A DNA stretch of 64,000 nt, from the NCBI RefSeq assembly GCF_021869535.1, contig NW_026262679.1:30814001-30878000 (forward strand), given 5' to 3'. How positions within the stretch are numbered: the first letter of the stretch is position 1; every line of letters starts with the position of its first letter. Below are positions 33,509-61,050 of the stretch, in pieces. Below the pieces are notes generated by a model. That model did no database searches and was not told the DNA's origin. It worked only from the letters and a program-made list of their open reading frames with translations. A program made the position numbers and the translations under genes. Origin of the DNA: Mytilus californianus. Its lineage: Eukaryota.

Positions 33509-34163
33509 TATATACGCCCGTCAAAATTTTGACGGGACGTATTATGGTATACAAATGTCGTCTGTCCGTCTGTCTGTCCAGCGTAAACATGTCGCACCGT
33601 AACTTGAGAACGACATGAAACTTAACATAGTTGTTTCTAATGATGGTCAAACGATCTGTATACTTTTTGGTGAAAATAAGATTAAAACCTTTTGAGGTAC
33701 GGGACTTAGTAACTAAAACAGGTGTGTGTTTTTTTTCACATGTCGCGCGGTATCTCAAAAACAATTTATGATTATTGCTTAAAACTTTACAAACTTCTTA
33801 GTTATATTAATCTTAAGATCTGTTTTCTTTTTGGTGATGATTCAAAATTTTATTTTTGAGTTATTGAGTATTTTGTAAAAAAAAGGGGGAGGGGTTTTTC
33901 ACATGTCGCGCCGTATCTCAAAAACAATTTATGATTATTGCTTAAAATTTTACACACTTCTTAGTTATATTAATCTAAAGATCTGTATACTTTTTGGTTT
34001 TGATTCAAAATTTCATTTTAGAGATATTGAGTTTTTTGTAAAAAAAAAAGGGGGGGGGGGGGTTTCGCATGTCGCGCCTTATGTCAGAAACTATTTATGA
34101 TTATTGCATAAAAATTCACACACAAGACGACGGGCGTATCATGCGCTTATAGCGCAGCTGTTT
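33509..34163 (+). mobile_element. Helentron-associated non-autonomous element (HINE/DINE-1-like), copy 1
   Basis: 5' ATACGCCCGTC subTIR with partner GACGGGACGTAT, (GTCY)n, about 162-bp internal tandem units, 3' GACGGGCGTAT and hairpin GCGCTTATAGCGC. Confidence 0.75.
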
Positions 34164-37018: not shown

Positions 37019-37496
37019 AAAGTCCTAAACTTAATCGCATTTTGGTTCCGATGAGGGATTTAACGATACCACGATCCATTTTCTCTCTCATGGTTGGATT
37101 GTTGATGGAGTCTAATTGACTTAACATATTTTTATCACACACAGAATTACGTGTCGGTGTATCTTTATGTCGAGCATAACAGAGATCATGACGATAGGCA
37201 GCTTCATCGACTCGATTTAAAGATTTAGACCAAGATTTAGGTGTTTTATCTGTATTGAGTCGTTGATGTAATTTATTCCCAGGTCCCGTAAACTGATGTC
37301 CCGGAAGATGCATTTCTACGGGTAGATGGTTAATGACTTTATTCATGAAACCCTTACCACTATGGACAAACTGAAATTTCTTAGATCCACATACGGTGCA
37401 GATTCCACCTTTTCTTCGTCGTCCGTTGCTAGTCGTCTCTTCGAAGAGACTTTTCGTTTATGTATTCCTCTTAAATTTTAAACAATAGATTTTCAT
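36981..37496 (-). pseudogene. Zn-ribbon plus parvovirus-type phospholipase A2 protein (PLA2X-like)
   Basis: MKIYCLKFKRNT*...NGRRRKGGICTVCGSKKFQFV...GKG...HLPGHQFTGPG...NRVDEAAYRHDLCY...CDKNML. Confidence 0.8.
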
Positions 37497-37509
37497 TTTA
37501 TTTAAATAA

Positions 37510-38150
37510 ATGGACGTTGAAGATATCTTATAACTTTCTTCTTAAATAGATGAATGGTTAGAGTACGATTGTTTGCATGTTTTTCAACACATCTATCGAC
37601 TTTTACAAAAATCATTGGAAAAAGGATACACAAAAAAAGTTTCTCGTGATCTCTTGTCCGTTTGAAGAAAATGTCCTCACTCTTTGATCGATGTCGTAGA
37701 AGATTTACCTCCACCTCAACAACGTAGTTGTATCTTTTATGAACAAGGAAACGAAGTACCAGACCCTAGATAACTTGATCCCCATCGTAAGAACTTAATG
37801 GTGTTTGATGATTTGATGTTGAGCAAACAGAATAAATGTGAAGACTATTAAGTCCGAGGTCGACATAACAACTTGGATTAATTTTATTTATGTCAAAATT
37901 ATTTCAAACTTCCACGTCAAACGATTCGTGAAAATAGTAACTTTATATATTTATTTCCACTAGACGCTAAAAGTCTTCAACACATTCATCGCGATCATTG
38001 TTGTTTAGATTCAACCGTTTAAGTTTTTAAAACGTTGTGCAATCACTGCAAGTCTACACCTTACCGATTTGTGACCATCGATTTGGCTAGATCAAAGGAA
38101 AATGGAAAAGACAAATCTAAATTAAAAGAGTTCTATCGTTTGCAAATAAA
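37510..38150 (+). pseudogene. FtsK/A32-like packaging ATPase with the Walker A region deleted
   Basis: WLEYDCLHVF...VPDPR*LDPHRKNLMVFDDLMLSKQNKCEDY*VRGRHNN...QNYFKLPRQTIRENSN...FVTIDL. Confidence 0.85.
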
Positions 38151-38480
38151 ATAATAAACCCAAATAACGATTTTGAAGAATATTTAACTGTTTGGTGATA
38201 GTAGCAATAGTAGTAGCGATGATGATAATTTAAGATATTGTAAAGAACATAACTTTCTACGTTATGACGACAGGGTAAATCTATGTTTAACATGTGGTGT
38301 TGAATAAATCTATAATTTATTTGACCATGATAATGATTTCGACAATTGGAATCTAGGAAAAACCTACAATCGTCGGAAACATCAACAACCACCATGTAGT
38401 GCAATGACAAACAGAGGACATCAATGCACTCGTCCATGTCAACCCAAGAAAAAACTCTGCCTTAGAGACTTGAATTTTAA
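38151..38480 (+). pseudogene. VLTF3-like N-terminal zinc ribbon joined to a CCC(H) finger
   Basis: CKEHNFLRYDDRVNLCLTCGVE*...DFDNWNLGKTYNRRKH, then CSAMTNRGHQCTRPCQPKKKLC. Confidence 0.4.
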
Positions 38481-38571
38481 GAAGGGGAAAGTAGTCTATA
38501 TATTACCCCCATTGTTTCAACGACTAATTAAATGCTAAAGAACTTCAACGCTTCATTGCTTATAGGGCGTT

Positions 38572-38640
38572 CAACGTTCAACGTTCATCGTTCATCGTTC
38601 AACGTTCATCGTTCAACGTTCATCTTTCATCGTTCAACGT
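38572..38640 (+). repeat. 10 x 7-bp CAWCGTT tandem array abutting AATAAATAAATG
   Basis: Direct reading. Confidence 0.9.
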
Positions 38641-41402
38641 AATAAATAAATGACGTTCATCAATATCACCGATCCTAAACAACGTGAAGCTCTTGCTAAG
38701 GAGTTACACGATATCATGCGTAGCATTCAAGCTAGCAACTTACAACAACAATTGGATACACAAGGATTGAGTCGTGATCTTAACAATGTTTTTAAACAGG
38801 TTGTAGAAGCACAAGAGAAAACAGTTTCTAAGATTCCTAAGACGATTGAAGATCTCCCAAAGATCCTACCACTCCCTGCATTGCCTCCTCTACCTCCCAA
38901 GTTTGCAGATCCACCTACAAACATTATTAACGTTGGTCCTCTAGCAAAACTTTATTTACACCTTATGACTACTAACACTAGTAACTCGAATTTAGCTTGA
39001 ACGGACAAAAACGCATTAACGGCATTTAAAAAAGATTAATGATAATTAAATAAAGATTGACAAAAATTAAAAATTATTTTTAATGCATTTCAATCCATAT
39101 CAAATCATTTTAATACCAGTCAAATAGTTTCCCTTGCGGTCATTCAAGTTAATTTGAGATGTGGTTAAACTGCGTCAAACTAATTAGCCACGCCCCCGTT
39201 AAACGGAATCAAACTGATGTTAAGTCCTTTTAAATTTAAAGTGTCCGCCTTTTTGTAAGGTAAATCACTCAAGCGGTACAGCATCCTCGTGTATCTATCG
39301 TTTAACCGTTCCGAGCGTTATCGATTTTAGTATGAAAAGTAAAAATGTACCTCTTACAAATATTCACATTAAAATTAAATAATGACAAATACATGTGTAA
39401 ACTAAGTTTTTTATAGTTAATGATGCCAGATTTTCAAAATGCATCGAAAATTATAATTAGTTCTTTTTTTTATTTGTAAACACGCAGCAGCTCTTGAGAT
39501 AAAAAAAAAAGTGACTGTGATAAAAAAAAAATATTATTTTGCTTGAAATAAAACGAGAAAGCTGGTAGTTATTTAATAGCCAATAAAGGGACCAAAATGA
39601 GCATGTTTGATGAATGCCAATGGATGTTGTACGCAAACATTAATCTCTATGAAGGTATCGTCTGATCAAAAATGTAATTTCGTCGAGAATATGCAATAAT
39701 ATTTGCCACGGTACGTTAAGCAAATTTAATTGAACCAATTCCGTCCCGAACTTTTAAAAATTCACATTAAAACATATCTTTTTTTTTTGTCTAATTCGCC
39801 TGGAAAATTAAAATTTCGTTTAGCTTAAACAGTTTTAAATGCGCCCCGTACTCGTATACCGGATACCAAATATACATGAACACTGTTTGTCTTGAGTCTG
39901 ATAGTGCTCTGCTAGTCATTACTAAATTCATACGTGTAAAACTATACAATTTTACTCATCTGCCTTCAACACAAAGTCTTGGCTAACACCGAACAGCAAG
40001 CTATACGGTGCCCCAAAATGACCAGTGTAGAACCATTCAAACGGAAAAACTAACGGTCTATATATTCGACTTTTGAAATACATAATCAAACAACAACCAC
40101 TAAACAGCAGGTTAGGGCAGATGCAAACAAATGCAGCGGAGTTCAAAAGCCCAAATACACGAATAATTCTCGAGACTTAAGTGACATTGTTTTAATAAGA
40201 TCAGAACCTTATATGTGTTAATTTTAAAGCAAAAGATATAAGTTTGTAAGAAAATATTGACGTACCAATTCTAATAGCTAAGAAAATTTCCTTTTGCTAA
40301 ACGATGATAACATTTTAACATTTTGGAATACCTTATAATTCATAATCTATTTCTGAAACGACTTCTCGCCTTGAACATGTATGAAATGTTTGCCACTGGA
40401 CGTTAAACAACCATTAATCAATCATTCAAATTGTGCTTTAAAAATGAATTAAGCCGCAAGTGTATCCATCAATGAGTGCTGTTGTTTGTTTATCCATTTA
40501 ACATATACTGAATTCGTTTTTGTCCAGAATTATATTCCTTAGAAGAGTTCAAGTATGTAAATAAATTCATAGGGTATCATGTGCTCGTTGAAATTTTTCA
40601 GTGAAATCAGTATTGTGTGTCCAACGTTCTTTCATGCATATCAAATGTTTATCCACTTTTTGCTGTTTGTAGTCTGTTAGTCCTCGGTCTCCATACTTTA
40701 GCACACACTTATGTAATGACAAATCTCGAAAAGGGGAACATTTTTTTTTATTGAAAAAAAAAAATAAAACAATTTCTATATTCTATTATTCAATTAACCG
40801 ATGTACACCTAAGATTTTCAACTATAGATGTTGAATTAAAAAAAAACAATAATAAGTCCCAATGTATTTTTATGGCAAACATATCTAAAGGGTTATTTTC
40901 TCATGCAAAATAATTATTTTTTCATTTTTTCAAGATAATAGTGTTATCAGATATGTTCTTTGACACGTGTCTTACGGGTCACCGATTTTCGGCAAAATCA
41001 AAGAAAATCAGCAAGTGCCTAAACATTAGTTTTAAGAATGTTGATGCTGTATTAATATATGGAACATGTCTTCATACCAAAATATAGTACTCACATTTAA
41101 TTTTCTTGTAAATGAAATTGGGAATGAATATGGGGATTATTGACGTCATACTCAACTCCGAAATATATAAAACAAACTAAAATTAAAAGTATACAAGACT
41201 AACAAAGGCCAGAGGCTCCTGAATTGTGACAGGCGCAAAAATGCGGCGAGGTTAAACATATTCATATTTTTTTTTCGAATTGTCTTTTTTTGTGAAATTA
41301 TTCAGCAAAAAATTAATCTATTTATTTTTAATACAATGAAACAAGATTTTTTTTAACGAAATGAAGTATTTTTTCGTCCCTTATATTCAAAGGAAATAAA
41401 CA

Positions 41403-41440
<38 letters not shown>

Positions 41441-41887
41441 CGCCCATCCTTCTCTTCACAACCCGCCTCCCCCTTTAAATCCAGAAAAGAATGAATTGAC
41501 ATTTTATTAAAAATAAATGTAAAATCATAGATAAACTGCTATTATATTCTTATTAAGATCTACATTTTAACAGATTCGGGGACTAATATTTCTCTAAAAG
41601 CCCATGCATACACTAATATTTGTGTGTTTTTTGTTTCAAGTTGTTTCAATTATCATTTACATGTATGAGGCTATAAATGGGACCACCATTTATAAGTATA
41701 TGAATGGGGTTTACAGATTTGAGAATTATGAGGAAACTAAGTTAATAAGAAGCGAGGCAAAAAAAAACTAGATAACAGAATATAGAGGTGGTGTAACCCG
41801 AATAATTCAGTCGTTATATTCCGCTGATCTACGATTACTACATAAATTCAAAATTTTATGAATGTTGACATTGATAGAAATAGTTTT

Positions 41888-42553
41888 TATACGCCCGTCA
41901 ATTTTTGACGGGACGTATTGTGGTATACAAATGTCCGGTGTCCGTCCGTCCGTCCGTCTGTCTGTCCGGCGTAAACATGTCGCACCGTAACATCAGAACG
42001 ACTTATCCAAATTTTATGAAACTTAACATAGTTGTTTCTTATGATAGTCAAACGATCTGTATACTTTTGGTGAAAATAAGATTAAAATTTTTTGAGTTAC
42101 GGGACTTAGTAACTAAACCAGGTGTGTGTTTTTTTTTCACATGTCGCGCCGTATCTCAAAAACAATTTATGATTATTGCTTGAAACTTTACACACTTCTT
42201 AGTTATGTTAATCTTAAGATCTGTATACTTTTTGGTGATGATTCAAAATTTTATTTTAGAGATATTGAGTATTTTGTTAAAAAAGGGGGAGGGGTTTTTC
42301 CACATGTCGCGCTGTATCTCAAAAACGATTTATGATTATTGCTTAAAATTTTACACACTTCTTAGTTATATTAATCTTAAGATCTGTATACTTTTTGGTT
42401 TTGATTCAAAAGTTTATTTTTGAGATATTGTGTTTTTTGTAAAAAAGGGGGTTTTCGCATGTCAGGCCGTATGTCAGAAACTATTTACGATTATTGAATA
42501 ACAATTCACACACAAGACGACGGGCGTATCATGCGCTTATGGCGCAGCTGTTT
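41888..42553 (+). mobile_element. HINE/DINE-1-like element, copy 2
   Basis: Same structure as, and closely similar to, 33509-34163. Confidence 0.75.
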
Positions 42554-43230
42554 ATTTGAAAATATTTTATCGAACTTTGATATCGTAATCTGTAAAGTTC
42601 AACGAGACTTTTTGTACCTTTTTTCATGGACTGTCTCGGATATAACGATAACGCAAATCACGTGTATATAACATGGTATAGGCCCAGGAAGATATCATTT
42701 CATTATCACTTCCTAATATCCAATCCACAGACACGAGTCACACGACATCCCCGTATCTTCTAATTTTACTAGTATACGAATTACCAACAAATTTGGCAAT
42801 TACCAGTTGTTGACGCTAGTAAGAAAATGAATAGTTAAGTTCGAATTATTATTATTTCAAATGTCAAAAACACTTTAAGTATTATAACAGATCATCTAAA
42901 AATCAAACTAAGTAAGAAGTATCACAGCTCAGTTCAGGCCAATGTCACTCATTAGGACTTATAACTAATTGAAATACTGACACATTGCTTATAGTTTGCC
43001 TAACGCTAATTTGAATCGTAAGATATTACTGATTTAAAAACTTGTAGTATCAAAATTGAATTGCATAAATTAAAAAGAAATACATTGTGTATCTAAAGTA
43101 TTTTCATCAGCTTTCCGGATGATCCTAATAATATTTACCTTTCAAATGATTTTTCTACAGAAGGTTATATATCATCTCTCTGGTCACTAAATGCAGTGCC
43201 CTAAAGCTAAAAGTCACCGTCAGATGTATA

Positions 43231-44508
43231 GACGTTGCGCACGATGTTGGTACTACTTAGCGTTTCACGACGTTCCTCAAAATAAGGCGATTTCGACGAT
43301 TTCAAAGAAAGTTTCAGGCGTTCAAGCATATTATTGATGATGTCAATTTACTGTTGTGAATTTGGTAACCGATTTTCGGTTTGTCTGAAAAAATGCATAA
43401 ATTTACAAATAAAACTCAAAGTGGTCGTATAGATATTTTTTAATGAAATTCATTTACAGGAGTTGTCAGTCTTTCCAGGCCATAATTGATAATTTTCCTT
43501 TCGGCAGCAGTTCGCATTAATGAATCCGATACAATAATGTCCAAATTTACACAGATTTATTTTTAATATAAATTAGATTTTGAATTCATATTCTCCTATT
43601 TTTTGCATATTTATTGTTGCATTTCTTCCCGTTTCCGTTTCCTTTCTATATTTTATCATTTCCCGATGCTTTCTTTGTCGCAAAATATTTAGGAAGTTAA
43701 ACATTCGGGACTCATGTTTTAAATTTTCTCATTTCCGTATTTTTGTGGCATATTCTTTGTTTGTTATAATTGCCAGCAATGGGTTTTCTCTATTTTATTT
43801 TATTAACAAAAAAATATACATGTTACTTTTGACGATTTAAAACTTGCAGATAGACAATGTTCCTTATATAAAACAAATATGCTATAAAAAAAACCCTAAG
43901 ATCCCAATATTTTTTTTATATTGATCTCATTTGGTCAACATTTGAATTTAAACTTAAACTATTCCTTTCTCATACATTGGTTGTATTGTAATTTATACAT
44001 GTATTTTTATTTTCATTCGAATTAAACTGGAAACAAATAATTACGACATAAAATTAAAAACCAGAGCATGACATCAATTACGTTTTGCGAACGTTGGGAC
44101 AAAACGGCTATACTTTTTGAAACGATCTAAAAACCTTGTTGCCTAACGAAAAAATATTAAACACTATATTGATTTTGCTTTAACACGCGAATAATTATAA
44201 CAATAGCAATATTATTGTGAAGTTTTACGATGATCAGAGAAAAAATACCGTAGGAGAGAAACGGAACTCTGATCTTTTGCACATAAAATGAAACGTTGGA
44301 CATTACGTTTTTGCGTAAAAATGAGATAATTAAGTGTTATAATTCCTGGTATTTTAAATTTCGATTCCTTTTTTTCTTTAATTTCAAGTCTAATGGAATG
44401 AATTCAATCAGAAATTACTATATTTTTATCGAACTGACCAGTCTACGTATTTATTTTTATGCTAATCTATAGCAAAATGGAATTGGTACATACATCGTGC
44501 GCAACGTC
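43231..44508. mobile_element. Candidate MITE with 17-bp TIR and 3-bp TSD ATA
   Basis: GACGTTGCGCACGATGT at 43231 and its reverse complement at 44492-44508, flanked by ATA on both sides. Confidence 0.4.
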
Positions 44509-47500
44509 ATAGTAAAAAGGCAAAACACGCTTAGTTGTTAATTTCTGTGTTATTTGGTCTCTTGGCGAGAGATTATACCACATCTCCTTATTTTTTTACA
44601 TTTGTTTGTGTTCAATGTGCAAACAATGCGAAAACATATTATATAGTATCTTTAAAATGAAACGGTGTGTAGAAATACCGCAAAGGACTTCTTAGTGCAC
44701 TAAGGACACAAAAACGATGTTTAAAGATCACAAAGAACATGGATATATTAAGTATATAACTCATAAATATAAAGTTTGGTATCAATAGATATTGTAATTT
44801 TGAAGTAAAATGACTTTTTAATCAGCGCGTGCCACTCGGTACGTGACCAACGGCTTATTGCAAATTCCCAATCATTAAGTTCAATCAACCATATCCAAAT
44901 AACAATCGTCTTTTGATCGTTACTAATTGATTAATTAATGATATTTGTTGAATAAACCTAACGGTTTAGGATGTTATAATTTGAAGATGATGAAAGAAAA
45001 ATTAAAAACTGAATTTTATGTTTACTTTGCCTTTGTTTTATTTTGTTTTGAAGGACATTGCTTTAGTAAACTTTTTTTTTTAAAGAAACCTGTTTTGAGA
45101 TAGAAATTGAGAAAAAAAATGCTTCTGAGATTTCATTTCCACATTTACAACTCTATAGTTTACATCATGACTATCATTATACCTTGAAAGACATTTGAGA
45201 GTAAAACATATTCTTCAAAACCCGATTATAGAAGTGATATAGAAAGACTTCAAGAGATCAATATTATTTTCAAAAAGAGAATAATCATATTAAATTGTTT
45301 TCTATGAAAGTTACCTTTATTACGGATGTCATTGTGTTTTTATTGTCATTCTCCGCCATATGTGTATTTTTTATAATTATAAAATTTAATTATGTTATTA
45401 ATATAACACTGATGCATTTAAAAAAATAATGTAAACCATATATTCTTGCTCCTAAATAAAACTCTTATAATCTTATCCTTAGTAAATCTTGTATGTGTAC
45501 CCATTAAAAGTATTTCGGTTGAACAAAATTACCGTTCTATAACTAAAATTTGGCCCAGTGATTTCAGAGGAGAAGATTTTTTGTAAAAGCTAACGACGAC
45601 GGACGCAAGATGAGCTAAAAATAAGAGTAGAAAATACGATATTATATAGAAGTAAAAAATATAACAGACAGAAATACAAAAAGCACCATATAACTGCATT
45701 TATCATGTTTATAAGATATTTCAGGTCTGCAAAAACATCACTATCTATCAAGCATATAAAAAAACAATTTCTTCTACTTAGAATATTACAGCAGGTCTTG
45801 TCAACCACACCAAAAAACAGTACTTTTAAAAAGATGTATAAACTTATCATCATCAGATAAAATATTAAAATCACCATTACTTCTTTTAACTTCATAAAAT
45901 AAACTTTCACGTAAATCTGCATATAAAGGACAGTCTAATATAATATGTTTCTCATCTTCAATTTTACATGTTTAATCAGTATAAAAAGTGGATTCTAAAC
46001 GGTCAAGGTTTTTCGAATTTCGGGATGTCGGGATTTAACTTTTTTTAAATTCGGGACTTCGGGATTTCATGTTTTTAAGCCCGGGATTTCGGGATCAGGA
46101 CCCCTCCGACCCCCCCCCCCCCCCCTCACAAAAGATATGATCATAAAATTTAAAATAATGTATTTTTACAAAGTCTATTTCTATATGCCATGTCCTTTGT
46201 GAAAGTTGTATCATTCCATCAGGTCCTTAGTGCACATTTTTCTTCTTAGTGTACGAAGGAGGTCCTTTGCGGTATTTCTACGAATGTGCTGCCTTGGAGC
46301 CTTTAAATTAGGAGACTGAATTAACGAGAGCTTCTAAACACCACCTAGGCCGCCTTTGTGCACTAAGCTCCTTTAACTGGACCAAGCCCATGATGGGATA
46401 GTGTTATGAATAAAAAATAAACGTACCGTCAAATGTAGTTTTTCCACAAGATATTTTATTATCTGATGTTGTTTGTCAAACAAATCAATCAACAAAGAAG
46501 CATGGATATTGAGCACTTGTATAACACTTGTACATAAGTTTAATAATGACAACTATCCATTTTGTTATAAAAAACATATGCATATTTTTTTTAATTTGAG
46601 GTTTCATATGACTTTAAGATCAATACCTCTTTATCTCTTCTAATTACGAAAACACAAGAATTATTTTTTTTTAGTTTGAAGTTATTTCTTAAAGGTTTAT
46701 TGGATCAATTAACAAGGTGATTAGACATTACACAAAGAAGAGCGCGTGCCACATTAAAATAATAACATAATTTTTTAAATTTTAAACTAAGGAATCGTTT
46801 TGAAACTAATTTTTATTAAGTTTTTGAAAAAAGTCATATTAATGGAAATTAGTTAAAAAGTCAAAGTTCAAAGTCATAAAGAAGTGTTCCGTGTAGAAAT
46901 GTTTTCGAAAGTCTAGTTTGTTCATAATTTCTCTATGTAAAACGGTTTTGTAAACTTCTTTAAATAAATTCGGATCTTCCCTCATCTGATCACCAGCATG
47001 GCTGAAGAAATTGTTCCCAGATGTATTGTGAGGTGACACGTCCAGGTATTCAAGCGATTTCCTGTCGGACTTTAAAACTCTTATTACACAATTACATAAA
47101 GCAAGTTGGTGCATCACTTGACCTCTGAGGGTATTGATCAGTGTACACGGCCGATAACTTGTAACTTTCCATTTTGAAAATATCAGGTGTAATATACATC
47201 TTTGTCTTGCGTGTCCGATAGTGATATACTATAGTCATTACTTATACGCTTGTTTATAAATAACGTTTCTGGTGTTAAGATTGATATTTATGAAAATCTT
47301 AATAATTCCCCCAAAAAGATCTGATAAAATAAAAATCTATTTACATATTTTCCAAGGGTATATACTCGTTGTCAATAGATATGGACATTTGAAACATACA
47401 CATTATATATGATTTCACAAAATGTACGCACTTGTCGATCATTTGTTTATACGGCTTGAAAGAATGTTATGGAACTATAATAATAATAGATAGTCTCAAT

Positions 47501-48426
47501 TAAGAATATATACATGTATATACATATTGAATATATGAGAGAAACATTCAAAACCAATCTGATTTTAAAACAGGTCGAAGTATTACTCGCTTTAATTTGG
47601 TTCGTCGAAGTTATGGACAAAGTAAAATTACAGATATATCTTTCGGTTAGATTATTTCGAACAGTTTAAGAAATTCGTCATCATCACAATTGTTGGGTAT
47701 AATCAGAGACATATGTCTAATGTATAATAATGTGAACATGGTTCTAATAGTACCTTAAATTATGTCAATTTTCCTGTTCCGACATGCATGTTATATATAT
47801 GCCACTGGACGTACATTAATGATCCCCAAAAAGAATTTCTGAATAATATGATTTATGATAGTTTGTATGAGTGTAACCATTGTAGCCAATGTAACCATTA
47901 TGTCAATGGGGGTTACAAAACAAGGTAACTCAATTTAGTGCAAATGTTGTGCCTTATATACCTTTTCTGCTCTCTGGTCGGATTGTTGTCGGACACATTT
48001 TCTATTTCCATTCTCCATTTTATTCAATTGGTTGCATGCATTTTTGTTTTGTCTCTCTCTGATGTTTTCGCAGAATTAATCTAAATATTTTAAAGAAGAC
48101 ATTTAACTCTTTCTTCTAAAACTTTTAGCATTAAAACCTAATTGCATGAAATTGAATTAGTATGTTATTATCAGTTTTATCACTTTTTCGGATGAACTTT
48201 ATAATATTGACCCAGGAAATGATTTTTGACAGAATTTTATATATTGTAGAATTCGTTCTTTTTATCGACACATTAGTTGATTATTTGCTTCCGTAAAATG
48301 ATATTTTTCGCGACGTCAAACTGTGAAATATCGGGAAAAAATGCATCTTTTCGAGATTTAACCATTAGCTTAAAAACGAGAACATGGACCCCCTCTTTTT
48401 AAAAATGGCATGATACTGTATGAAGA

Positions 48427-49249
48427 CAGAGACATATAATACAATTTGGCGTTTTACGTTTCCGCATTGTGGCACTACGTTTCCGCATTTTTATAGTACT
48501 CTTTTCCGCATTGTTTTTGCATTGATTTTATTAAAGGTTATTTACGTTTCCGCATTTAAATCTTTAATGTATCCCCCCCCCCTTTTTTTACTCACCAGTT
48601 GGGTGGAAGTAGGACTTCGAGCAGGATAAGTCTTTATGACTAAAATGAAACTACAAATGTATCAACTTAAAATGATAAAAATCACACATGGTCATATATC
48701 AATTAAAAGTCAATGTTCAGCACTAAAAGTTTATATATATTTTAAGCGTCAGTATACTATTATACAGTACATGTAGCACAGTTTAAAGCGGTAAACTTGT
48801 AGCCAACTGACTTTATAAAATCAACCTCGTATTCTATTCTCTACCATACTTGACAAACTGTTCGGATACGAATTCAGCACGTTCGCGATCATTTTTACGA
48901 ACTGATGCTATTGCTGATAAAGACCGAATTTTGATGTAAGTTGTTGTTTGGATCTTCTGCAAAACGTCCATAAAAATAAATATAATTGTGTGACATGGGA
49001 GAAACGATTCCGGCCCAGTTGTGGTTCTTTTGGTATCTGTGTTGGGAGGAGATGACCATATTTGATAATAAAGTCTTATACCGATATATCATTATTACCA
49101 TTTTTTACAGGTGAAATACAGGTAAAAATGCTGAAAAGTGGTATCTATTTATTTCGGAAAAGTAATGCACGAAAATGTGGAAACGTGAACTGGGTTTTTG
49201 CTAAAAATGCGGAAACTTTATACACCCATACAATTACTATATGTCTCTG
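48427..49249. mobile_element. 823-bp non-autonomous DNA transposon (P-like), 12-bp TIR CAGAGACATATA, 7-bp TSD ATGAAGA
   Basis: Perfect TIRs; TSD at 48420-26 and 49250-56; subterminal TTTCCGCATT repeats at both ends. Confidence 0.8.
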
Positions 49250-52200
49250 ATGAAGATTATTCGTTCCAACTTTTATGAAGAAATAACCGACTTTTTTCAA
49301 CTAGATAAATAAACAACAAAAATGCCGTTTTTTTTCTTCTAAAATCAATTTATTTCTTTAACAAAAAGGATTTTTGATAAGGATTGTTACACAAATGTAG
49401 AGCCCAATTTTGTAACGAAGATATTCCTTATCTCTTTACCGAAATACGCATACGTTTATCTTTTGAAACAAAATTTAAGGAGACAGAAATGTTCAAGAAA
49501 CCGAAATTTTTAGTAAATGTCGAAAACTTCAAACCCGTTTATCTTTAAAATTCAACACATGAAGATATAGATATAGTTTTTATTACATATTCAAGTTGAT
49601 TTTGTAAAAATTAGCTTGTATGTGAACTTTCATAAAAAAAACAGTGTTGTTGGTCGTTTGCCCATAATTGCCCTAAAGCTAAATGTCATCGTCAGATTGT
49701 GAGGGTCTGAATCGGGATTCATTATTTCTGTATTCTATAATTTTAGGCAATTTTTTCTATTCGTTATACCTTTTGCCGATCATTCTTTATTCCATGTATT
49801 CTAGAACCTCATCATTTTCTTTTCTATGTATTTGTCTGGTTATTTTCTGTTTTCTTTATTCTTTTGTCAATAATTTTCATCCACAACGTCATGTATAATG
49901 GAAGACGATAAACATTTTAGTATACATACCACCCGTTGTCAATTCTCCCCTGATATACAAACCACATGTAGTTATTTCTCACTTAGACACAGAACTTATA
50001 TATATATATATATATATATACAACTCGTCTAAACATCAACCCAACAATGTTAGATCTGTAAATTTGCTTTCGCAATTTTTTTGTTCTTCCCTCGCCGGGA
50101 TTCGAACCCATGCTACTGAGATATCGTGATATATATTTTACGTAATAGTAACGAATGGAATTTTATCGCACTGGCTTGTTAAATGTATTTTGATCTGACA
50201 ACAAGAATACATTTGTTTATCATAATTTTTTACTTTATCTAAAATTAAGAATGGAAATGGGGAATATGTAAAAGAGACAACAACATGAAAACAGAAGGCC
50301 ACCAATTATATTTGATCATGTTTTAGTTTCGAAAAAGGCATCAACCATCGTATTTTCAAAAAATCTTTACAAGGATGATCAAAGTTTTAACGACCTTGAA
50401 TGGCTATACAGACTGAGCCCTCGCACGGTCGGTCTCTAAAATTTGCCGAATTTAAGAAACTTTATCAAGAGATAGGCTTTGCCTAGCTTTAGGCCCCGGG
50501 TTTAAAACAATATCCATTTAGGAACCAAATTGTGGCTTCTTTATATTTAATTTTGTCGAAGAGAACAATTACACAAAGTGCAACATGCGAGAAGAGGTTT
50601 CATTTTCGCTTACATTATTTTTTATTGAAGTGACTAATCTTTTGAGGTTACGTCACGGAAATATATTTCAAATGAAAAGGTGCAATTGGATGCATCCCTA
50701 AAAAAAAATAAAAATATAGAGATAAAATTACGGCTATTCGTCAATCAGACAGCAATCCTACATAAAAACAAGTAGGTTATCTGACAAATAGAATAAAAGG
50801 TTAACTTTAAGCATAACCCGCGCTGATATCAACTTTCTAAGTTCTGAGTAAAATTCAACATACATGTAGGACTCTGAAACGTAAAATATACGAAAGTTTT
50901 TTTTTTTTACGTACGATACACGGAGAGTGCCATTTCCTAAATACATACGGGTCCACAAACTATTATAATGTAAGGGTACATGAGGATCTCATTAGAGGAA
51001 CAAAGTAAAGATGCATGCTGAAGGAAGAATAATTTCCACACAGAGAACATCAAAAAGGACGATCTCTCAATTAGTATGCAACTGTAACTAATACACCCAT
51101 AGACATTAACACTAGTTAATGCTTTATATACTGACATTGAAACAAATATACTGCTCATATAAAATTTGTCATTACTTTCCCGGGAAAAAGAATACGTTTC
51201 CACAATTAAAGTCTACGCTTCCGGAAATAAATACCTTACTTTTCCGAGAAAATAGTACAATTCCGGTATGTTCAGGCAAAAGTAGTAATATCTTTTAAAG
51301 TCAAATCCTAAGGAAAGGATGCACACAAGAGCTAACTGTACACATTCTGGTATGTTGTGTGGTTGAGTTGCTGTCTCTTTTACGTCTTTATCACATCTTC
51401 TCTTCGTATATGTACGCGACTTTGATATCGTCATGCATGGACACAATACTTCACTACATTTCCATTTTCGTATTTTGACATGATTAATATACAAATAAGA
51501 AGATGTGGTATAATTGACAAATTCGAGTAATTATACTACATAACATAGGTGATGTCATGATCACAAAACTTCCAATAATTTTGACATTGATCATTAGTTA
51601 TATTTTACTATTTTGTAAATTTGAGTTATTGACAAACAATCGCAGGTCTTTATTTGTAGCACGTTCCTTCGTTCACGTTTCCGCAAAAAGAAAAAGAGTT
51701 TTCTTCTCGGACTTTAACAGCCCTTTCCCGCAATTATTTTCAAGATAATTTCATATAACACATTATGAAATCCCGACCAATGAAATTTATTTGAATATTA
51801 AACGTGGCCTACGAGAGCACCTAGATTAAACTTGGGAAGTTAGAATAGCCAATTATTTTTTTTTATCTAGTAATTACCGCTAAAATATGCATTACCGCTA
51901 AAATATGCCTTACACAATTATATGACAGAAACATTTTATCCGACGTGCTTTACAATGTTTAAGTTACCTTTTGGTCTTAAAAACGTTTTTGAAAGCCGCA
52001 AATATAAAAATAAGGGTTTTTTTTAAATATTCCTTTTGGGCCAGGGCCGACCGTGCGAGGGCTTAATAGCCAGTCCAGTTCGTCAAACGTCATTTCTTGC
52101 AAGAATTATTTTACATGCGGACATAACGATAATCCCTTCGTAAACCCACTTCAAATTTCATTTGTCGTTTGTTGCTTTTACACAAATAACACACATTTTT

Positions 52201-53449
52201 AACCAGTGACCGGTATTACAATTTTACACAGATTTAAAAGTTCATTGAGCTGTTACTTTAATTACAAGTTTTAGCAAGACGAAACTGTTTACTAAATGAA
52301 TTCAACAAATGTCAAGCTCATCTAGATCAATTTTATTATTTAACAAAAAAATGTTTTTAATTACAAGCTATTTTAAATGTCGGTATAAATGTTAATGTTT
52401 TTTTCTTGCCAAAAATATAATATGCATCTATTAAAACTTATTGTCTATTGATTAAAAAAACATCTTTCCCTTCTAGGTTTGTAATGAGCACAATTACGAC
52501 CTTCTTATTATCTTTCCGGTTTTTATTTTTTCGCAGATATATTTAAAAGACCATACCTTACTTACATGCCACGAGTTTTCATATTAGTAAGCAATATTGA
52601 AAACGAATAATTTGATATAAAGAGCTATTTATTCTAACAGATTAACACTTTGTACTTTTTAAATCGTGCATCAATATTTAAAAATTTATTATATATCTAT
52701 TGTTCATTCGTTTATCTTAATTGTGAAGCATGTTTATTTTTTTTATTAAAAAGTCTCACCGCTTGTATAACATTATACATTCCAATATACATATAAAACA
52801 TTACGTATAACATAAATATTGGAAAACATATATAAAACTAACCACCAGTAAAATATCTTAAATCGATAACGCTCGGAGCGGATTAATGATAGATACACGA
52901 GGATGCTGTTCTGCTTGAGTGATTTACCTTACAAAAAGGCGGACACTTTAAAGTTTAAAAGGACTTAACATCAGTTTGATTCCGTTTAACGGGGGCGTGG
53001 CTAATTAGTTTGACGCAGTTTAACCACATCTCAAATTAACTTGAATGACCGCAAGGGAAACTATTTGACTGGTATTAAAATGATTTGATATGGATTGAAA
53101 TGCATTAAAAATAATTTTTAATTTTTGTCAATCTTTATTCAATTTTCATTAATCATTTTTAAATGCAGTTAATGCGTTTTTGTCCGTTCAAGTTAAATTC
53201 GAGTTACTAGTGTAATAAGGCTGACAAAATCTTCGGTTTACGTTCTGAACACAGAAAATTCTTCATCGGAAATTCAGAGGTCATGATCGATGGAAATGAT
53301 CTCTTTGTGGATAGAGTAAGGTACAAAGGAACCCCTGGTTTAAGCGAACTCATGGTGATGACACAATCCATGGATTATGAGCCTGATGATGTTGAACGCT
53401 ATAGTGAGATCTAAATACACACCGGTGCCATTTACCACGGCTTATTTAG

Positions 53450-53640
53450 CTGGACGCATGTTTACCTCTTCTACCGCAAAGACATGAGGAAGTAAAACCA
53501 TGACTGCTGCCACCAATGCAGCTCTTAAAGGTGTTAAAAAAGGAGCTACCAAAGCGGTGGATCATGTGGTTCATAAAGTAAGTTAAAAAGTTCGAGTCCG
53601 ACGGACAAAAGATGAACGTTGTGTTCTAAAGTATAAATAA
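53450..53640 (+). pseudogene. Ala/Lys-rich amphipathic Maverick ORF fragment (core-protein-like)
   Basis: AGRMFTSSTAKT*GSKTMTAATNAALKGVKKGATKAVDHVVHKV. Confidence 0.35.
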
Positions 53641-55081
53641 ATGGATAATGAATTTTTACAGCAAATCGTTGAGAATACAACACCGCAACATGGGTTATCT
53701 TTCATTATATCTGCTAATAACAACAAAATCGATACCCGGTTCAATCTACCCATTCACTTAAAAGATGGAAAGAGTTATGAAATGACACTGGTGAATCTAG
53801 TTACTTTCTACTCTTTCCCAAATATTCATGCAGGAAACAACACCTTTCGTTATTTTAATTATAATGGTTCCACCTGGTTTAGTATTGCACTGAAAACTGG
53901 TTCTTACTCTATCGAAAACATCAACAACGGGTTACAAAGACATCTGCGACTCAACAAACACCTCACCAAAATTCACATCGGCGACAATCGCAGTACACTG
54001 AAGGCAACACTTACTTAACTAAAACCTATCAAGTAGATTTTAATGCCAACAATAGCTTAAAAAAAAAAGTAAAATCACAAAAATACTGAACTCCGAGGAC
54101 AATTCAATCGGAAAGTCCCTAATCACATGGCAAAATCAAATGACAAAACACATCAAACGAATGGACAACAACTGTCATATTCCTGACTTGGTACAGGCAT
54201 TTTCAAATGTAGAAAATGGTGGATTGAACCTGGTTTTATAGCGCTAAACCTCTCACTTGTACGAGAGTCTCATCAAATTCCGTTATATTTACAACGATGC
54301 GTGAACAAAACAGACATAATAAATAAAATAGTCAAAATATGGGTACAGCAGTCATCACTGTGCTACAATATCAAAACAAACAATCATTTACAAAAAAGCA
54401 CAAAAGCATCTATCAAATTAAAAACCACATTCATTGCTTCGCGTGTCTGACGTCAGAAAATGTAAACGTCACATAAGAAGAAATTTTGTCGTTCAATGTT
54501 TATTCAAAACAATTTTATAATTTCACATGGGGAATGTTGGTATATAGGGTTAAAAAATCCAAAGTTATGTTAGAATTAATTTCAGAAATAGACCGAGATT
54601 TAAAATTGTCCAGAAGTTCTTAAGAATTTTTAAGAATCCACATATGGTTAATACCACTACGCGAGTAAAATAAATTTGTCGTTTGTCGTTCAAAGTATTT
54701 TCAAATTTATAATAGAACAATAACATAATGACATATACAATACAGTGCTGGGTTTCAGCCAAGGAATCTAAACACACTATCGAGCTACAAACGGTTACAC
54801 AGAGGGTGAGACTATATTGTAAACATCATTGGAATCAACAGCATTCACGTCAATAGTGATATCTTCAGTGGTAGCTATGTCAATGGATCACAAAAACCTA
54901 CCATCTATAGTTTTTTTCCAAATGTATTCCCCCTGGTATGAAAATCATCCAAACCCCTAGAAACTTGATCTATTTACCAATCACACTGAAAATCATCAAT
55001 CGTATGAGTACTACTCTAACGGATCAAAACGGAACTCCAATTGATCTGAGAGGTCAACATTGTCATCTTCGTCAGGTATAA
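53641..55081 (+). pseudogene. Minor capsid protein (penton, PX), interrupted at about 54059-54738
   Basis: TRFNLPIHL...YEMTLVNLVTFYSFPNI...NNTFRY...GSYSIENIN...; after the insertion NTVLGF...IVNIIGINSIHVNSDIFSGSYVNG...IYSFFPNV...NLIYLP...TDQNGTPIDLRG. Confidence 0.88.
54059..54738 (+). mobile_element. Interspersed repeat (AATACYGAACTCCGAGG family) inserted in the penton gene
   Basis: Same family at about 25355-25620; penton frame reads NSL|NTVLGF across the insertion. Confidence 0.7.
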
Positions 55082-55099
55082 ACACCTTAAAGGGAGGTG

Positions 55100-55594
55100 T
55101 TGATAGAAGTAATATCAAATCAAAATATAGATAAACTAGTCATGAGATACAATTGGTGTGTTTCAAAGATTGATTCAGATCATGTGATATGGTGTCTCGT
55201 CGATAAGGAGTGTCCATACGATTATCTTACCCTTTAGTCAGGTTGGAAGATTCGTGAGTACAAATTTGGCGATAGTGAGTGTATTGTAACCAAACCCCGT
55301 TTTTGTTCATTTGAATGTTGTTAAGCCTTCATCAAAGACAATTCACATGATTATAAATATGTAAAATCTAAACAGTTGTTAATGGAAATATTTAGAAAGG
55401 TAAATAAAAACGATGAACCTGAAACCTGTTGTTCAACGCGTAGAAGTAAAATAGCAATATTTGGGGGTAATGTTGAGTATTCTGAATTCAAAAACATATT
55501 TAAAGAAAATACTTACTATAAACAACGCGCTGTTGCATTACGCCCTGCTCAGATTATTTATGGTAAGGTGGAAGAGCATATGGATTGGGAATAG
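55100..55594 (+). pseudogene. NCLDV VLTF2 (A1L-family)-like late transcription factor relic
   Basis: One frame with two stops: ...RFCSFECC*AFIKDNSHDYKYVKSKQLLMEIFRKV...RRSKIAIFGGNVEYSEFKNIF...Y...P. Confidence 0.6.
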
Positions 55595-55664
55595 ATAAAC
55601 GTTTTTTTTTTATTATTTTATTAATTAGAATAAATAAAAAGATATTTTCGCTAGATAATAATAA

Positions 55665-56287
55665 ATGAATTATCATACTTATGGTTTTAATTTTGACACA
55701 AGGTCAAGCAAATAAATTACAAAAAGCGGTCAAGACTAGTTGTCCTGATAGTATTTGTTTATCACATGCTAATTAAACGGGGGAAGATAAGATGTTGCTC
55801 ACTCAGCGACAAATACAAGAAATTGACTAGTTGTTAAAAAGTGGTAAAGATGGTATGGTCTTGGAGCTGAGTGTAAAACAGCTCAACCAAACATGCAAAA
55901 ATAAGGTGGATTCTTACCCATGTTTGCCAGTTAAGCTATGATAGCTCTTCCCATGTTAATTAGCAAAGAGTGTACTCCCCGCTTTGGGAGTAGGTGCATT
56001 GAGTGGTTTAGGTAGTGCTGCCATGAGCAAAGCCATTGGGTCTGGTCTCTACCTTAAACGTGGAGGTAATGTGTGCTGTTTAAAGGCTCGAGGTAAAGGT
56101 CTACATCTCACCCCAGGTCAACTTACTTCTACCTATGGGAATGGTCTGTACTTGAAACATGGAAAGCAGTTTTATAACTATTGAACATCGGTATACTACT
56201 GTTGCCTTCATTTATGATGGTAATGAGTTAATTATAGGTCCTAACAGTCCCTTCAAAAACATTCCTCTGTTAGGAATGGTTCTTTAA
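55665..56287 (+). pseudogene. Conserved Maverick core-like protein with GGFL and GxG motifs
   Basis: MNYHTY...TQGQANKL...MLLTQRQI...GGFLPMFA...LGVGALSGLGS...GSGLYL...GKGL...GPNSPFKNIPLLGMVL*. Confidence 0.7.
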
Positions 56288-56300
56288 GTTGTAAAACTAA

Positions 56301-56700
56301 ATGGATGACGTAGACTTAAACAAGCAAACGTATCGAGAAGATAAAATTCGATCCGTGAACACCTACAGAGGAAGAGGTGCTTAAATACACCAAAATTTTA
56401 AAAACATCGCTTGCATTCCTTTTAGTTCACTAGCAGTCCTTTTTTCTAATGAAGGGGTTAATGGTATTCTCCAAACGTATTAATAAAAAACGTAAAAAAC
56501 ATAAAGATACCGTACACCTTATCAGAACTTCTAAATCCAAGATCGAAGTTGCAGTTAGTAAAGCTTTGGATATTGATGACATTAGTGACATAGTGTTTAC
56601 CGGTATTGTTACATACTTAGTCTCTTACTACGATGAAAAACAAACATTACGAAAACCATCACACACAATAATAAAAATATCAGTAATAATTTCCCGATAG
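56301..56700 (+). pseudogene. Conserved small Maverick ORF (YRxDKI...hydrophobic stretch...KKH...VSKALD..IS)
   Basis: MDDVDLNKQTYREDKI...FSKRINKKRKKHKDTVHL...VAVSKALDIDDISD. Confidence 0.6.
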
Positions 56701-56932: not shown

Positions 56933-57262
56933 CTAACAAGATCGTATGAGAACTACTCCTGTTTGTTTTTTTTTTTTTTTTTTTACTAACTTTAAAACCC
57001 GTACTTCTCATATAGGCTCCTTTCAAAAGTTCCATTTTTTTGTTTAGGCCACTACAAGCCCATAACTTAATCATTTCCTCTTCGTTTTTTAAAAAAAAAA
57101 TAGTTTTATTTCACCAAACTTACCATCTACTTCTATAACCTCTAAAATTTTGTAAATCACTCCGGTGGGGAGTTCTTTCCATTTTTAAGTTTCTTGATTT
57201 TGCTCCTGTACCTTTTCCTCAAAAGCGTTGTCATTTATAAAATCATCTTGTAAGAAAGCCAT
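56933..57262 (-). pseudogene. Small beta-rich Maverick ORF, possibly an OB-fold ssDNA-binding protein
   Basis: MAFLQDDF...*KWKELPTGVIYKILEVIEVDGKFGEIKL...KLWACSGL...YMRSTGFKVSKK...FSYDLV*; not in the ORF track. Confidence 0.45.
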
Positions 57263-57667
57263 ATTATTATTACTTATACCATCACTTTCTTTTAAAGTGT
57301 TTTTTTTTCTTCACAAATAGACTCTTCGTCTAAATAATTAAACTGTAAAGGAGGACTAGGAGGACTGTTGCGTATTCCAAAGGTAAAACTCATTATTATC
57401 ACTATTTTCTAAAAAGGCATGTTTAATTCTTCCTACAATTATATATTTTACTTATAACAATACTTGCTTTTTTATTTCAATATTTCAAACGTGTTTTTAT
57501 TAAAACAAAATCAAATATTTCATCTCTTACTCCTATTTGAAAATCAATAACTCCTATTTTTTACTTAGTTACTCTTCGTTTACCATCTATCTTCCATTTC
57601 TGAAATTATATGCTGATTTTCTACTTTAAAATTGAAAGTGCGGCTGAATCCCCCTTTTTACACTACG
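57258..57667 (-). repeat. Maverick right TIR
   Basis: Reverse complement of the left TIR, with about a 40-bp insertion and a divergent middle. Confidence 0.85.
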
Positions 57668-59444: not shown

Positions 59445-61050
59445 AATAAAAATGAATATTTTGTCCTACAATATGCAGGACTTTGCAAGAAAAAGTTAAA
59501 AAAAAAGTGAAAATAATTTTCTCGCTAAATAAATGAAAAGTGCTATCAACCCGTGTAAAATGAATATTCTATGAGAAAAAAAACTCCTCCCACTGAAAAT
59601 CAAATGGCCCGCTAAGGCTATTAAATTTAATCGTGTTTTTAACGGAGCAATTTTTGAGTTTTTTGTTATAAAAATAGGAAAATAACTTAATTCATAGAAT
59701 TATTATAATAATATTTATTCAATATATGTAACTTCCTTAGATATTCAAAATAAAATCCACGTTCTTGATATCTAGTTTTATGAACACTTAACCCATACAA
59801 GGCCTACATTGCCTATCGACTGGAGTCAAAACCTGTTTCAAACTACATGTTAACATTGATTTTTATCAATGGGAACGTAATTGAGTTTAGTTTAAGTGTA
59901 GAGTACACTTACATCCCAACTCCTTTGTTCTAACAGGGGTGATCTGAGTCTTACACCACACTGCGAATATCTCAATGTGAACACGGCATTAGTTACTAAT
60001 TACTTTTTACACTTGACTTGTTATGTAAAATATTTAAAACAAGTCATTGAATTATATAATTTGGTGCTGTTTGTAAATTTTACCTTAGACGAATTTAACT
60101 GTGGTATTAAGCCTATTTTATTGAACAAACAATGTTTAGCTCACAAAGTTCTATGTATTGGGTTCCATTATTTATTATATTAAACCTGAAAGAGGTTCTC
60201 CTAGCGACACAGTAGTATCATACGTTGTATCCATTCCATTAGCACGAAAAGGCCGGTAAAAATGGTTGAAGACTATCATTACCTAAGAGTTGTCATGATA
60301 TAGACGTCTGTATGATTTAAATAATACATTTTAGTACTTAATCTGAATTGATTGTATCCTATTTGGATTGAACCGTGAAGGCATATTTTGTTTTATATAG
60401 TATAAAACGTTCAATGTATTTTTCTTCCTTTACAATTTGTCTGAGACGCACTGATATCGGTGTCATGAAGCAATAGTAGAGCTTTCTTACATTTAGACGA
60501 AACATACAAATGAACGTAAAGGGAGCTTGTATAACATTCCCACGATAATACTGAGAGTCTATGGCCGTGTTCCTATTGAGCTAAACTCGGTGTGGTGTAA
60601 CTGTACTCTTCACTTAAACTAAACTCTACGTTCCCATTGATAAAAATCAATGTTTACATGTAGTTTAAACAGGTGTTCACTACACGCAGTCGATTGTCAA
60701 TGTAGGCATTGTGTGGGTTAAGTACTGGTGTTCATAAAACTAGACCTTAAGAACGTGGATTTTATTGTGAATACTTAAGGAAGTTACAAATATTGAAAAA
60801 AAATGATTATAATAATAATATGAATTTAGTTATTTCCCTATTTATATGACAAAAACTCAAAAATCGTTCCGTTAAAAACAGTATTAATAAATTTAATTGG
60901 ACCATTTGATTTTCAGTGGGAGGGGGGGGTTTTGCTGATAGAATATTCATTTTACACTCCGGTTGATAGTACGACTTATTTATTTAGCTCGACAATTATT
61001 TTCACTTTTTGTAAACAACTATTTCTTGCAAAGTCCAAAATATTCATTAT
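59445..61050. repeat. Inverted duplication or foldback: arms of about 470 bp (59445-59915 and 60597-61050) around a spacer of about 680 bp
   Basis: For example CTCCCACTGAAAATCAAATGG / CCATTTGATTTTCAGTGGGAG and ACATTGATTTTTATCAATGGGAACG / CGTTCCCATTGATAAAAATCAATGT. Confidence 0.8.

Follow-up and report, generated by a model that had tools for sequence, protein, structure and literature searches.

A dead PLA2-type Maverick in Mytilus californianus with a motif at the starts of its virion-module genes and a giant-virus-type FCS-zinc-finger gene: hints of a giant-virus-style programme

The stretch analysed here, called the window below, comprises 64,000 nucleotides of the Mytilus californianus genome (contig NW_026262679.1, positions 30,814,001 to 30,878,000 of the forward strand; all coordinates are positions within the window). 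It contains a dead Maverick of the phospholipase A2 (PLA2) type, that is, an adintovirus-like one, which has been cut by two unrelated transposons and in which all genes are broken (Table 1). Two features of this element are notable: a motif linked to the starts of its virion-module genes, and a small gene with a zinc finger of the FCS type, called VLTF2-like below, which is of giant-virus type. Together they hint at a giant-virus-style programme rather than prove one, and apart from them the element is mostly an ordinary dead Maverick.

The outer element has the boundaries of a Maverick/Polinton (class Polintoviricetes), for which terminal inverted repeats (TIRs) of hundreds of bp and a target-site duplication of 5-6 bp are characteristic. 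Its TIRs (26635-26940 and 57262-57666) are 87-91% identical, and the 6-bp duplication CCCAAT flanks it on both sides. The integrase expected of this class is retrovirus-like and often carries a chromodomain; here the core was recognised by its motifs, by eye, and the chromodomain by a hidden Markov model (HMM) match over the cut-off (Pfam Chromo PF00385, E 2e-6). A gene for a phospholipase A2 domain of the parvovirus VP1 type, characteristic of PLA2X-type (Alpha) adintoviruses, is also present (Pfam PF08398, E 2.6e-8, 34.4 bits against a cut-off of 23.9), and because of it the element was grouped with the PLA2X-type adintovirus-like Mavericks (PMC8502044). From left to right, the left arm contains open reading frame (ORF) 1, the protein-primed PolB and the adenain-like protease on the + strand, then the integrase and PLA2 genes on the - strand. 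The right arm, all on the + strand, contains the A32-type ATPase gene, a Cys/His stretch, the split ORF, the penton-like, VLTF2-like and Gly-rich core-like genes and a gene for a small hydrophobic/basic protein. The virion module of the class comprises a double jelly-roll major capsid protein, a penton, an A32-type ATPase and an adenain-like protease. A major capsid protein gene could not be recognised anywhere in 26635-57666; it may have been deleted, or it may be too decayed to be spotted without an intact relative.

Table 1. Coordinates of the Maverick, its genes, the copies of the start motif and the nested elements in the window.
Feature	Start	End	Strand	Remarks
Outer Maverick/Polinton-type element	26635	57666	.	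31.0 kb with two nested foreign elements; own sequence 11.8 kb
TIR-proximal ORF1	26946	27455	+	Zinc-ribbon-like stretch and Rho_N/HeH-like motif; one in-frame stop; start context TAATATG
Protein-primed PolB	27921	29936	+	Broken, pieces in two frames, no open frame; exonuclease and polymerase motifs by eye
Adenain-like cysteine protease	29976	30731	+	Broken; adjoins nested element 1; start TTAATG; His and Gln/Cys motifs by eye
Nested foreign element 1	30732	35745	.	TIRs of 21-bp repeats, 96-97% identity; 6-bp duplication AAGTTG
Integrase core and C-terminal chromodomain	36198	37000	-	Broken, stops in all three frames; core motifs by eye
TAAATAAATG without following ORF	36217	36226	+	Between converging + and - strand gene ends
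Parvovirus-type PLA2	36981	37496	-	171 codons, one in-frame stop
TAAATAAATG at ATPase ATG	37503	37512	+	13 bp from divergent PLA2 ATG
A32/FtsK-type packaging ATPase	37510	38151	+	Seven in-frame stops in one frame; Walker B visible by eye
Cys/His-rich stretch (earlier called VLTF3-like)	38155	38538	+	In ATPase frame, after ATPase stop; no start codon; three in-frame stops
TAAATAAATG at split ORF ATG	38643	38652	+	(CGTTCAA)n array just before
Split ORF, function label lacking	38650	53640	+	First 108 codons open; one nested insertion; second part with stops and frameshifts
Nested foreign element 2	38975	53213	.	14.2 kb; TIRs of about 356 bp, 91-97% identity; TAA duplication; PIF/Harbinger-like, non-autonomous
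TAAATAAATG at penton-like ATG	53634	53643	+	TAA beside ATG also in-frame stop of upstream frame
Penton-like gene	53641	55090	+	First 125 codons open; rest with stops, frameshifts and one small dispersed-repeat insertion
VLTF2-like FCS-zinc-finger gene	55142	55594	+	Two in-frame stops, no frameshift against intact relative
AATAAATG at core-like ATG	55660	55667	+	Ends A/T-rich spacer following VLTF2-like stop
Gly-rich core-like gene	55665	56184	+	Broken, at least 7 stops per frame; no Pfam match
TAAATG at last-gene ATG	56298	56303	+	AAAC precedes, in place of TAAA
Last gene, hydrophobic then basic small protein	56301	56700	+	Broken: stops and frame change

The ATPase gene, the split ORF and the penton-like gene all start at the 10-mer TAAATAAATG. 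The start context of the core-like gene is AATAAATG, that of the last gene ACTAAATG and that of the PLA2 gene AATAAAATG (also given as TAAATAAAATG), and the VLTF2-like gene starts with neither TAAATG nor any of these variants. A preliminary description of this DNA had pointed to TAAATG at 37507, 38647, 53638, 55662 and 56298 on the + strand and to TAAAATG at the PLA2 start on the - strand. All five copies are present, each ATG opens a frame, and the PLA2 gene does begin at TAAAATG, with its ATG at 37496, 13 bp from the divergent ATG of the ATPase gene. Two caveats raised there are also correct: the stray TAAATG at 38529 is real, with another at 37833, and the TAA of the penton-like start at 53638 doubles as the stop codon of the upstream ORF. 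The 10-mer stands exactly at the start of the 116-aa and 125-aa ORFs, the longest two of the right arm, and the start of the ATPase gene is unverifiable because a Walker A motif (G-x4-GK[ST]) is absent from every frame of the window. A (CGTTCAA)n array of 10 units (38568-38640) fills the spacer ahead of the motif of the split ORF, which would be odd for a promoter core.

At a G+C content of 33%, the window contains 110 copies of TAAATG against 98.2 +/- 9.5 expected, i.e. the hexamer is not enriched. The full TAAATAAATG occurs 6 times against 1.2-1.35 expected from Markov models, and the + strand of the Maverick proper (11.8 kb) holds 4 of these 6 copies (0.2 expected, Poisson P 6e-5). For AATAAATG, 6 of the 18 window copies are on the + strand of the Maverick (P 0.002), including the one at 55660 and one inside the ATPase gene. 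TAA stands before the ATG at 5 of 9 assignable starts, against 4.1% of the ATGs in the whole window (P 1.3e-5 with this background, 9e-4 with a background taken as 10%). The motif and its clustering are plain facts of this sequence, and the earlier statement that TAAATG marks the starts of structural genes finds partial support in the form of an A/T start-linked motif common to the virion-module genes, not of an enrichment of TAAATG itself.

Composition could in principle produce such a pattern by chance, if TAA-rich spacers in a window of 33% G+C supply the motif and if the starts in broken genes were picked with the motif in mind. We consider this improbable, given that the exact 10-mer is found 4 times where 0.2 are expected, that both best-defined ORFs open at it, and that every copy is on the coding strand, with 0 of 6 copies of AATAAATG on the - strand of the element. 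Some counts do agree with chance: TAAATG occurs at its expected frequency, the 10-mer with one mismatch allowed is found 31 times against 29 expected, only one triplet precedes ATG in the window more often than TAA, and the starts counted as lacking the motif are near-variants of it. Moreover, of the five TAAATG starts, three (ATPase, core-like and last gene) are unconfirmed by homology and open only short frames, a point that also weighs against a start signal.

The second feature is the VLTF2-like gene. A HMMER search of 1.84 billion proteins with its 89-aa open piece gave five relatives, of which three are gene models of Mytilus coruscus. The best relative (P0001) is intact, 169 aa long and 57% identical (E 5.7e-20). 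Aligned with the window by tblastn, it covers 55142-55570 in a single frame (51% identity, E 3e-41), and because of this alignment the ATG at 55142 was taken as the gene start. The window copy has retained the FCS block, and one Cys of the C-x2-C pair is substituted. The VLTF2-like gene and the last gene are linked in other copies too, because two of the M. coruscus models fuse parts of their products; tblastn with the C-terminal parts of P0005 and P0002 detects the last gene of the window at 76% identity (P0005, E 1e-25) and 54% identity (P0002, E 2e-15). The VLTF2-like gene is thus no accident of this copy but a stable constituent of the family of elements. The M. coruscus models P0002, P0003 and P0005 are chimeras of Maverick gene fragments, one of them also with a GDSL-lipase domain, i.e. 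Maverick relics have been annotated as host genes in that species.

A distant relative (P0004) comes from a 2.1-kb metagenomic contig of 28% G+C, where its gene is flanked on one side by a minor-capsid P9 gene (PF19066, E 1e-14) and on the other by a gene for a deoxynucleoside monophosphate kinase, which is a giant-virus context. A pattern scan of the Joint Genome Institute metagenomes revealed 60 more loci (60 stretches of at most 1.6 kb each), on contigs of up to 168 kb and mostly of 17-30% G+C. In the alignment of 61 sequences, among them the intact Maverick relative, 7 columns are invariant and 8 columns are conserved in at least 90%, including the C-x2-C pair, the F-C-S-F-x-C block and a G-G pair, and 8 of the 61 family members match Pfam zf-FCS (best E 5.6e-5). 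A profile made only from the giant-virus-type contigs finds the intact relative (E 2.4e-21) and the window gene (E 6.9e-10), and nothing else in the window. No member of the family was found in the viral contigs that were scanned for it, and a word-based protein search with the 89-aa piece gave no match, which is a weak negative.

As in VLTF2 (vaccinia A1L, NCVOG1164), an FCS-type zinc finger is contained here in a small protein, with a C-x2-C pair and an F-C-S-x2-C block, and the gene is conserved on contigs of giant-virus type and size. In a giant-virus genome paper, an FCS-finger protein was equated with the vaccinia A1L/VLTF-2 late factor (PMC12085832). The difference is that VLTF2 belongs to Nucleocytoviricota, whereas the gene found here lies in a Maverick (phylum Preplasmiviricota) and is matched by no model named VLTF2; the factor has been described as undetectable outside Nucleocytoviricota and is treated as a giant-virus signature gene (PMC11253617). 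From its sequence and relatives, the earlier assignment as VLTF2-like is probably right in kind, in that the gene is real and belongs to the FCS-finger family of giant-virus-type contigs. We call it VLTF2-like and not VLTF2 because no VLTF2-named match was obtained.

In a neighbour-joining tree, which is crude and has no support values, the Maverick sequences join a clade made up of P0004 and the metagenomic loci L002-L008. Its members have the FCS-finger gene and the minor capsid P9 gene side by side in divergent orientation, 47-77 bp apart (L001-L007, e.g. L004:1-1379). Directly before the P9 ATG, 5 of 7 loci have TAA and a further one has TAAA, and the P9 proteins are only 36-40% identical. 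At the starts of ORFs of at least 60 aa, TAAATG is found in 9 of 20 cases in this nearest clade and in 1 of 46 in the other clades (P 3.7e-5, counted over mutually homologous loci), with a background of 6.7% in both. As read from these contigs, the factor subtype carried by the Maverick accompanies putative TAAATG-type starts in giant viruses. It is conceivable, if doubtful, that an animal Maverick lineage acquired a VLTF2-type late factor together with the TAAATG-type start signal for virion genes of the lineage from which the factor came.

The same clade bears on a virophage-like explanation, according to which a giant virus with TAAATG-type late promoters, present in the same infection, supplied the RNA polymerase for the virion genes, and its lineage was the source of the VLTF2-like gene. 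The grouping of the Maverick factor with a clade having TAAATG at 9 of 20 ORF starts would fit, as would the borrowing of giant-virus promoters by virophages and polinton-like viruses (10.1101/2022.07.28.501842; PMC8547959) and the packaging of polinton-like viruses with entomopoxviruses, by which animals too can host such hyperparasites (PMC11296320). We nevertheless think it very unlikely: nothing links the giant-virus contigs to bivalves, the tree that joins them to the Maverick is the crude one without support values, and the element has retained an integrase and its own DNA polymerase, as ordinary nuclear Mavericks have.

We prefer, tentatively and at somewhat less than even confidence, to read the motif as a signal for transcription that is tied to the starts of the virion genes and is recognised, with the help of the element's VLTF2-like factor, by a polymerase that the element does not encode. 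The assignable virion-module genes would then start at a common junction motif, in the form of the full TAAATAAATG, the minimal TAAATG or, at PLA2, TAAAATG, which may act as a promoter or initiator. The VLTF2-like factor of the element would help to read it, and the polymerase would be external, the nuclear RNA polymerase II (Pol II) of the host being the likeliest, as has been proposed for mriyaviruses, which lack an RNA polymerase. Genes for RNA polymerase, VLTF1 or VLTF3 were not found in the element, and the preliminary description had likewise reported that no RNA polymerase gene is present. Two other roles of the motif were rejected. A TATA box of the same gene would be too near the ATG. 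The motif was also considered as a Kozak context; metazoan Kozak contexts favour T least at -3, and since the motif places T there, translation context does not explain it.

The main competitor for the start signal is a signal at the end of genes, in which the stop codons in two frames and AATAAA, the canonical poly(A) signal, serve the upstream gene and abut the next ATG because the element is compact, transcription is by Pol II in the nucleus, and the VLTF2-like gene is an unrelated passenger or regulator. We rate this as unlikely, and it does not exclude a start signal, because the two are not mutually exclusive. AATAAA is contained in 5 of the 6 motif copies, and it is found also at the ATPase stop and 3' of the VLTF2-like stop; it is, however, abundant in the window (232 copies), so that proximity alone says little, and it is missing from the 200 bp that follow the ends of the penton-like and core-like genes. 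The TAA at 53638, as an in-frame stop of the upstream frame, fits an end signal, as does the fact that Mavericks encode no RNA polymerase. The motif between the PLA2 and ATPase genes does not: the two ATGs are divergent and only 13 bp apart, and no gene lies upstream on the same strand for which the motif could be an end signal. An end signal also leaves unexplained why AATAAA is so often followed by TG on the + strand of the element (6 of 33, against 18 of 232 in the window). The copy at 36217 favours the end signal, since it lies where genes converge, with no ORF behind it and with an AATAAA of the - strand (36202) 15 bp away; its first TAA closes the upstream open frame.

Several points weigh against the preferred reading of a start signal used with the VLTF2-like factor. 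It rests on one decayed copy, and the extension of the motif beyond TAAATG was identified post hoc; TAAATG itself shows no excess on the element's + strand (9 copies against 10.2 expected). With AATAAA and stops in two frames inside it, the motif can be read as a gene-end signal, and the copy at 36217 precedes no ORF. For the factor, no match named VLTF2 or A1L was obtained in Pfam, NCBIfam or the PDB sequences, and the structures predicted from shallow alignments (predicted local distance difference test scores of 38.5 and 32.7) are too poor for a fold search. The TAAATG counts at ORF starts of the giant-virus loci are not independent, as these loci are homologous to each other. Finally, the contrast between early and late genes is blurred. 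Among the genes that had been described as lacking the motif, near-variants are found at the starts of ORF1 (TAATATG) and the protease gene (TTAATG), and these weaken an early/late split. The proposed early/late programme is not supported as a clean split: the motif stands at 5 of 6 starts on one side and 0 of 3 on the other (Fisher about 0.05, hand count), and significance is lost once the protease is placed among the virion genes.

The other late factor that had been proposed fares worse. The stretch at 38151-38480 had been called VLTF3-like, and no HMM or homologue supports this: the pieces of the Cys/His-rich stretch at 38155-38538 gave no match at E<=1 in Pfam, PHROGs or NCBIfam, a word-based protein search with a 76-aa piece found no homologue (a weak negative), and no other piece of the element matched the VLTF3 family model (A2L, Pfam Pox_VLTF3). 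The stretch resembles nothing but the zinc stretch of ORF1, and that weakly (E 0.32). Short broken pieces are poorly detectable, as even PolB escaped Pfam, and the negative for VLTF3 therefore falls short of proof. Of the earlier interpretation as a whole, the start-linked A/T motif and the gene of the FCS-finger family remain, with a nearest clade that also has TAAATG at ORF starts, and VLTF3, a clean early/late split and an enrichment of TAAATG do not.

Compared with known systems, the element resembles the PLA2X 'Alpha' adintoviruses/Mavericks in its long TIRs, 6-bp duplication, chromodomain integrase, parvovirus-type PLA2 and animal host, and in genes read by eye as protein-primed PolB, adenain-like protease and A32-type ATPase (PMC8502044). 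It differs from them in that this copy has no recognisable major capsid gene, all genes are broken, two transposons are nested in it and an FCS-zinc-finger gene is added. Such a gene is not mentioned in the Maverick/adintovirus literature that was searched, where neither promoters nor VLTF2 are discussed, and nothing of substance linking TAAATG with Polintons was found in the literature searched. The poxvirus late promoter TAAAT(G) also overlaps the start codons of structural genes and occurs between divergent genes with a very short spacer; the transcripts begin within it, bear non-templated 5' poly(A) and are made by a virus-encoded polymerase with VLTF1/2/3. In contrast to it, no viral RNA polymerase, VLTF1 or VLTF3 accompanies the motif here, and the upstream core is not uniformly A/T-rich (the CGTTCAA array at one site, coding sequence at another).

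Late factors in small genomes have precedents. Mriyaviruses (Yaraviridae, 'Gamadviridae') combine a small genome and giant-virus late factors (VLTF2 and VLTF3) with the lack of an RNA polymerase, and their expression in the host nucleus has been inferred (PMC11253617); unlike the present element, they live on protists, possess both factors and an HUH endonuclease, and lack PolB and integrase. Polinton-like viruses and a subgroup of polintoviruses have been reported to carry VLTF3 (PMC11131425; 10.64898/2026.06.19.733378; PMC8502044). Virophages and polinton-like viruses have promoters copied from their giant viruses (10.1101/2022.07.28.501842; PMC8547959): a short motif, placed at the gene starts or immediately ahead of them, matches the usage of the giant-virus lineage. 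Polinton-like viruses have also been found with entomopoxviruses (PMC11296320). The virophage cases rest on co-infection and expression data in protists, whereas here there is resemblance of sequence in an animal genome.

If an animal Maverick lineage did acquire factor and start signal together, VLTF2 would be on record outside Nucleocytoviricota for the first time, and a metazoan element would follow a temporal programme of giant-virus style under host Pol II or, as in virophages, under a giant virus of molluscs. We know of nothing established about the timing or the start of Maverick and adintovirus transcription. A family of Mavericks with a VLTF2-type factor and a common start motif would tie the two phyla of Bamfordvirae together by a regulatory module and would offer a definite sequence mark by which to search transcript data. 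One would then also have to ask if certain animal Mavericks depend on giant viruses or descend from their partners. If the motif is only a junction of stop codon and poly(A) signal, the remaining result is an FCS-finger gene common to mussel Mavericks and one clade of giant viruses.

As to the other genes, searches of about 40 open pieces against Pfam, PHROGs and NCBIfam matched only PLA2, Chromo, Rho_N and weak zinc ribbons, and generic signatures (P-loop, polymerase, protease) served only for gene labelling, by eye. ORF1 matches Pfam DUF5763 (E 5.5e-4) and, slightly below the cut-off, Rho_N (E 2.7e-5). It joins a C...C...C-x2-H zinc stretch (DUF5763-like) to a Rho_N/HeH motif of DNA-binding type, and a zinc stretch resembling that of ORF1 is seen again 3' of the ATPase gene and at the N-terminus of PLA2. 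In adintoviruses, 'Oncoid' genes lie upstream of PolB, the place occupied here by ORF1. The PolB pieces gave no match in Pfam, PDB or PHROGs and were identified by motifs seen by eye and by context; being recognisable in two frames, they imply at least two frameshifts, in addition to many stops. Likewise, HMM libraries and a PDB sequence search gave no match for the protease pieces, no rve HMM matched the short pieces of the integrase, and no Pfam family matched those of the ATPase. The N-terminal region of the integrase is unrecognisable and no pX-like C-terminal domain was recognised in the PLA2 gene, which would be compatible with a single internal deletion.

The split ORF has no family match in Pfam or PHROGs. 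For the penton-like gene, none was obtained in Pfam, PHROGs, NCBIfam or a word-based protein search (with a 125-aa piece, a weak negative), and the penton and core-like labels of the preliminary description are supported by none of the searches. The protease, integrase, penton-like, core-like and last genes and the second part of the split ORF each have at least 5 stops in each frame, which indicates stops plus frameshifts, and their breaks are not countable without intact relatives. An ORF on the - strand (38117-38437) was rejected as a gene, with antisense-like composition and no matches.

The span of 18.8 kb (37494-56303) that had been described as a Maverick includes 14.2 kb (38975-53213) of a foreign, TIR-bounded insertion. 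The interior of this nested element 2 has non-coding translations without a Pfam match. It was considered as a second Maverick or as the holder of the capsid gene, and both were rejected, since it is non-coding and has tandem repeats in common with the other insertion. The shared repeat is a 163-bp tandem repeat, located at 33732-34120 in element 1 and at 42132-42451 in element 2. Element 1 is about 5 kb long, with arms of about 1 kb made from 21-bp tandem repeats. A TAAATG at 53160 sits in the right TIR of element 2 and is unrelated to the Maverick. A dispersed repeat of about 190 bp is located at 25344-25528, and a second copy, 75% identical, lies within the penton-like gene. Outside the Maverick, a small TIR-bounded element resembling a miniature inverted-repeat transposable element is located at 59502-61010, and its TIR holds one of the two copies of TAAATAAATG found outside the Maverick.

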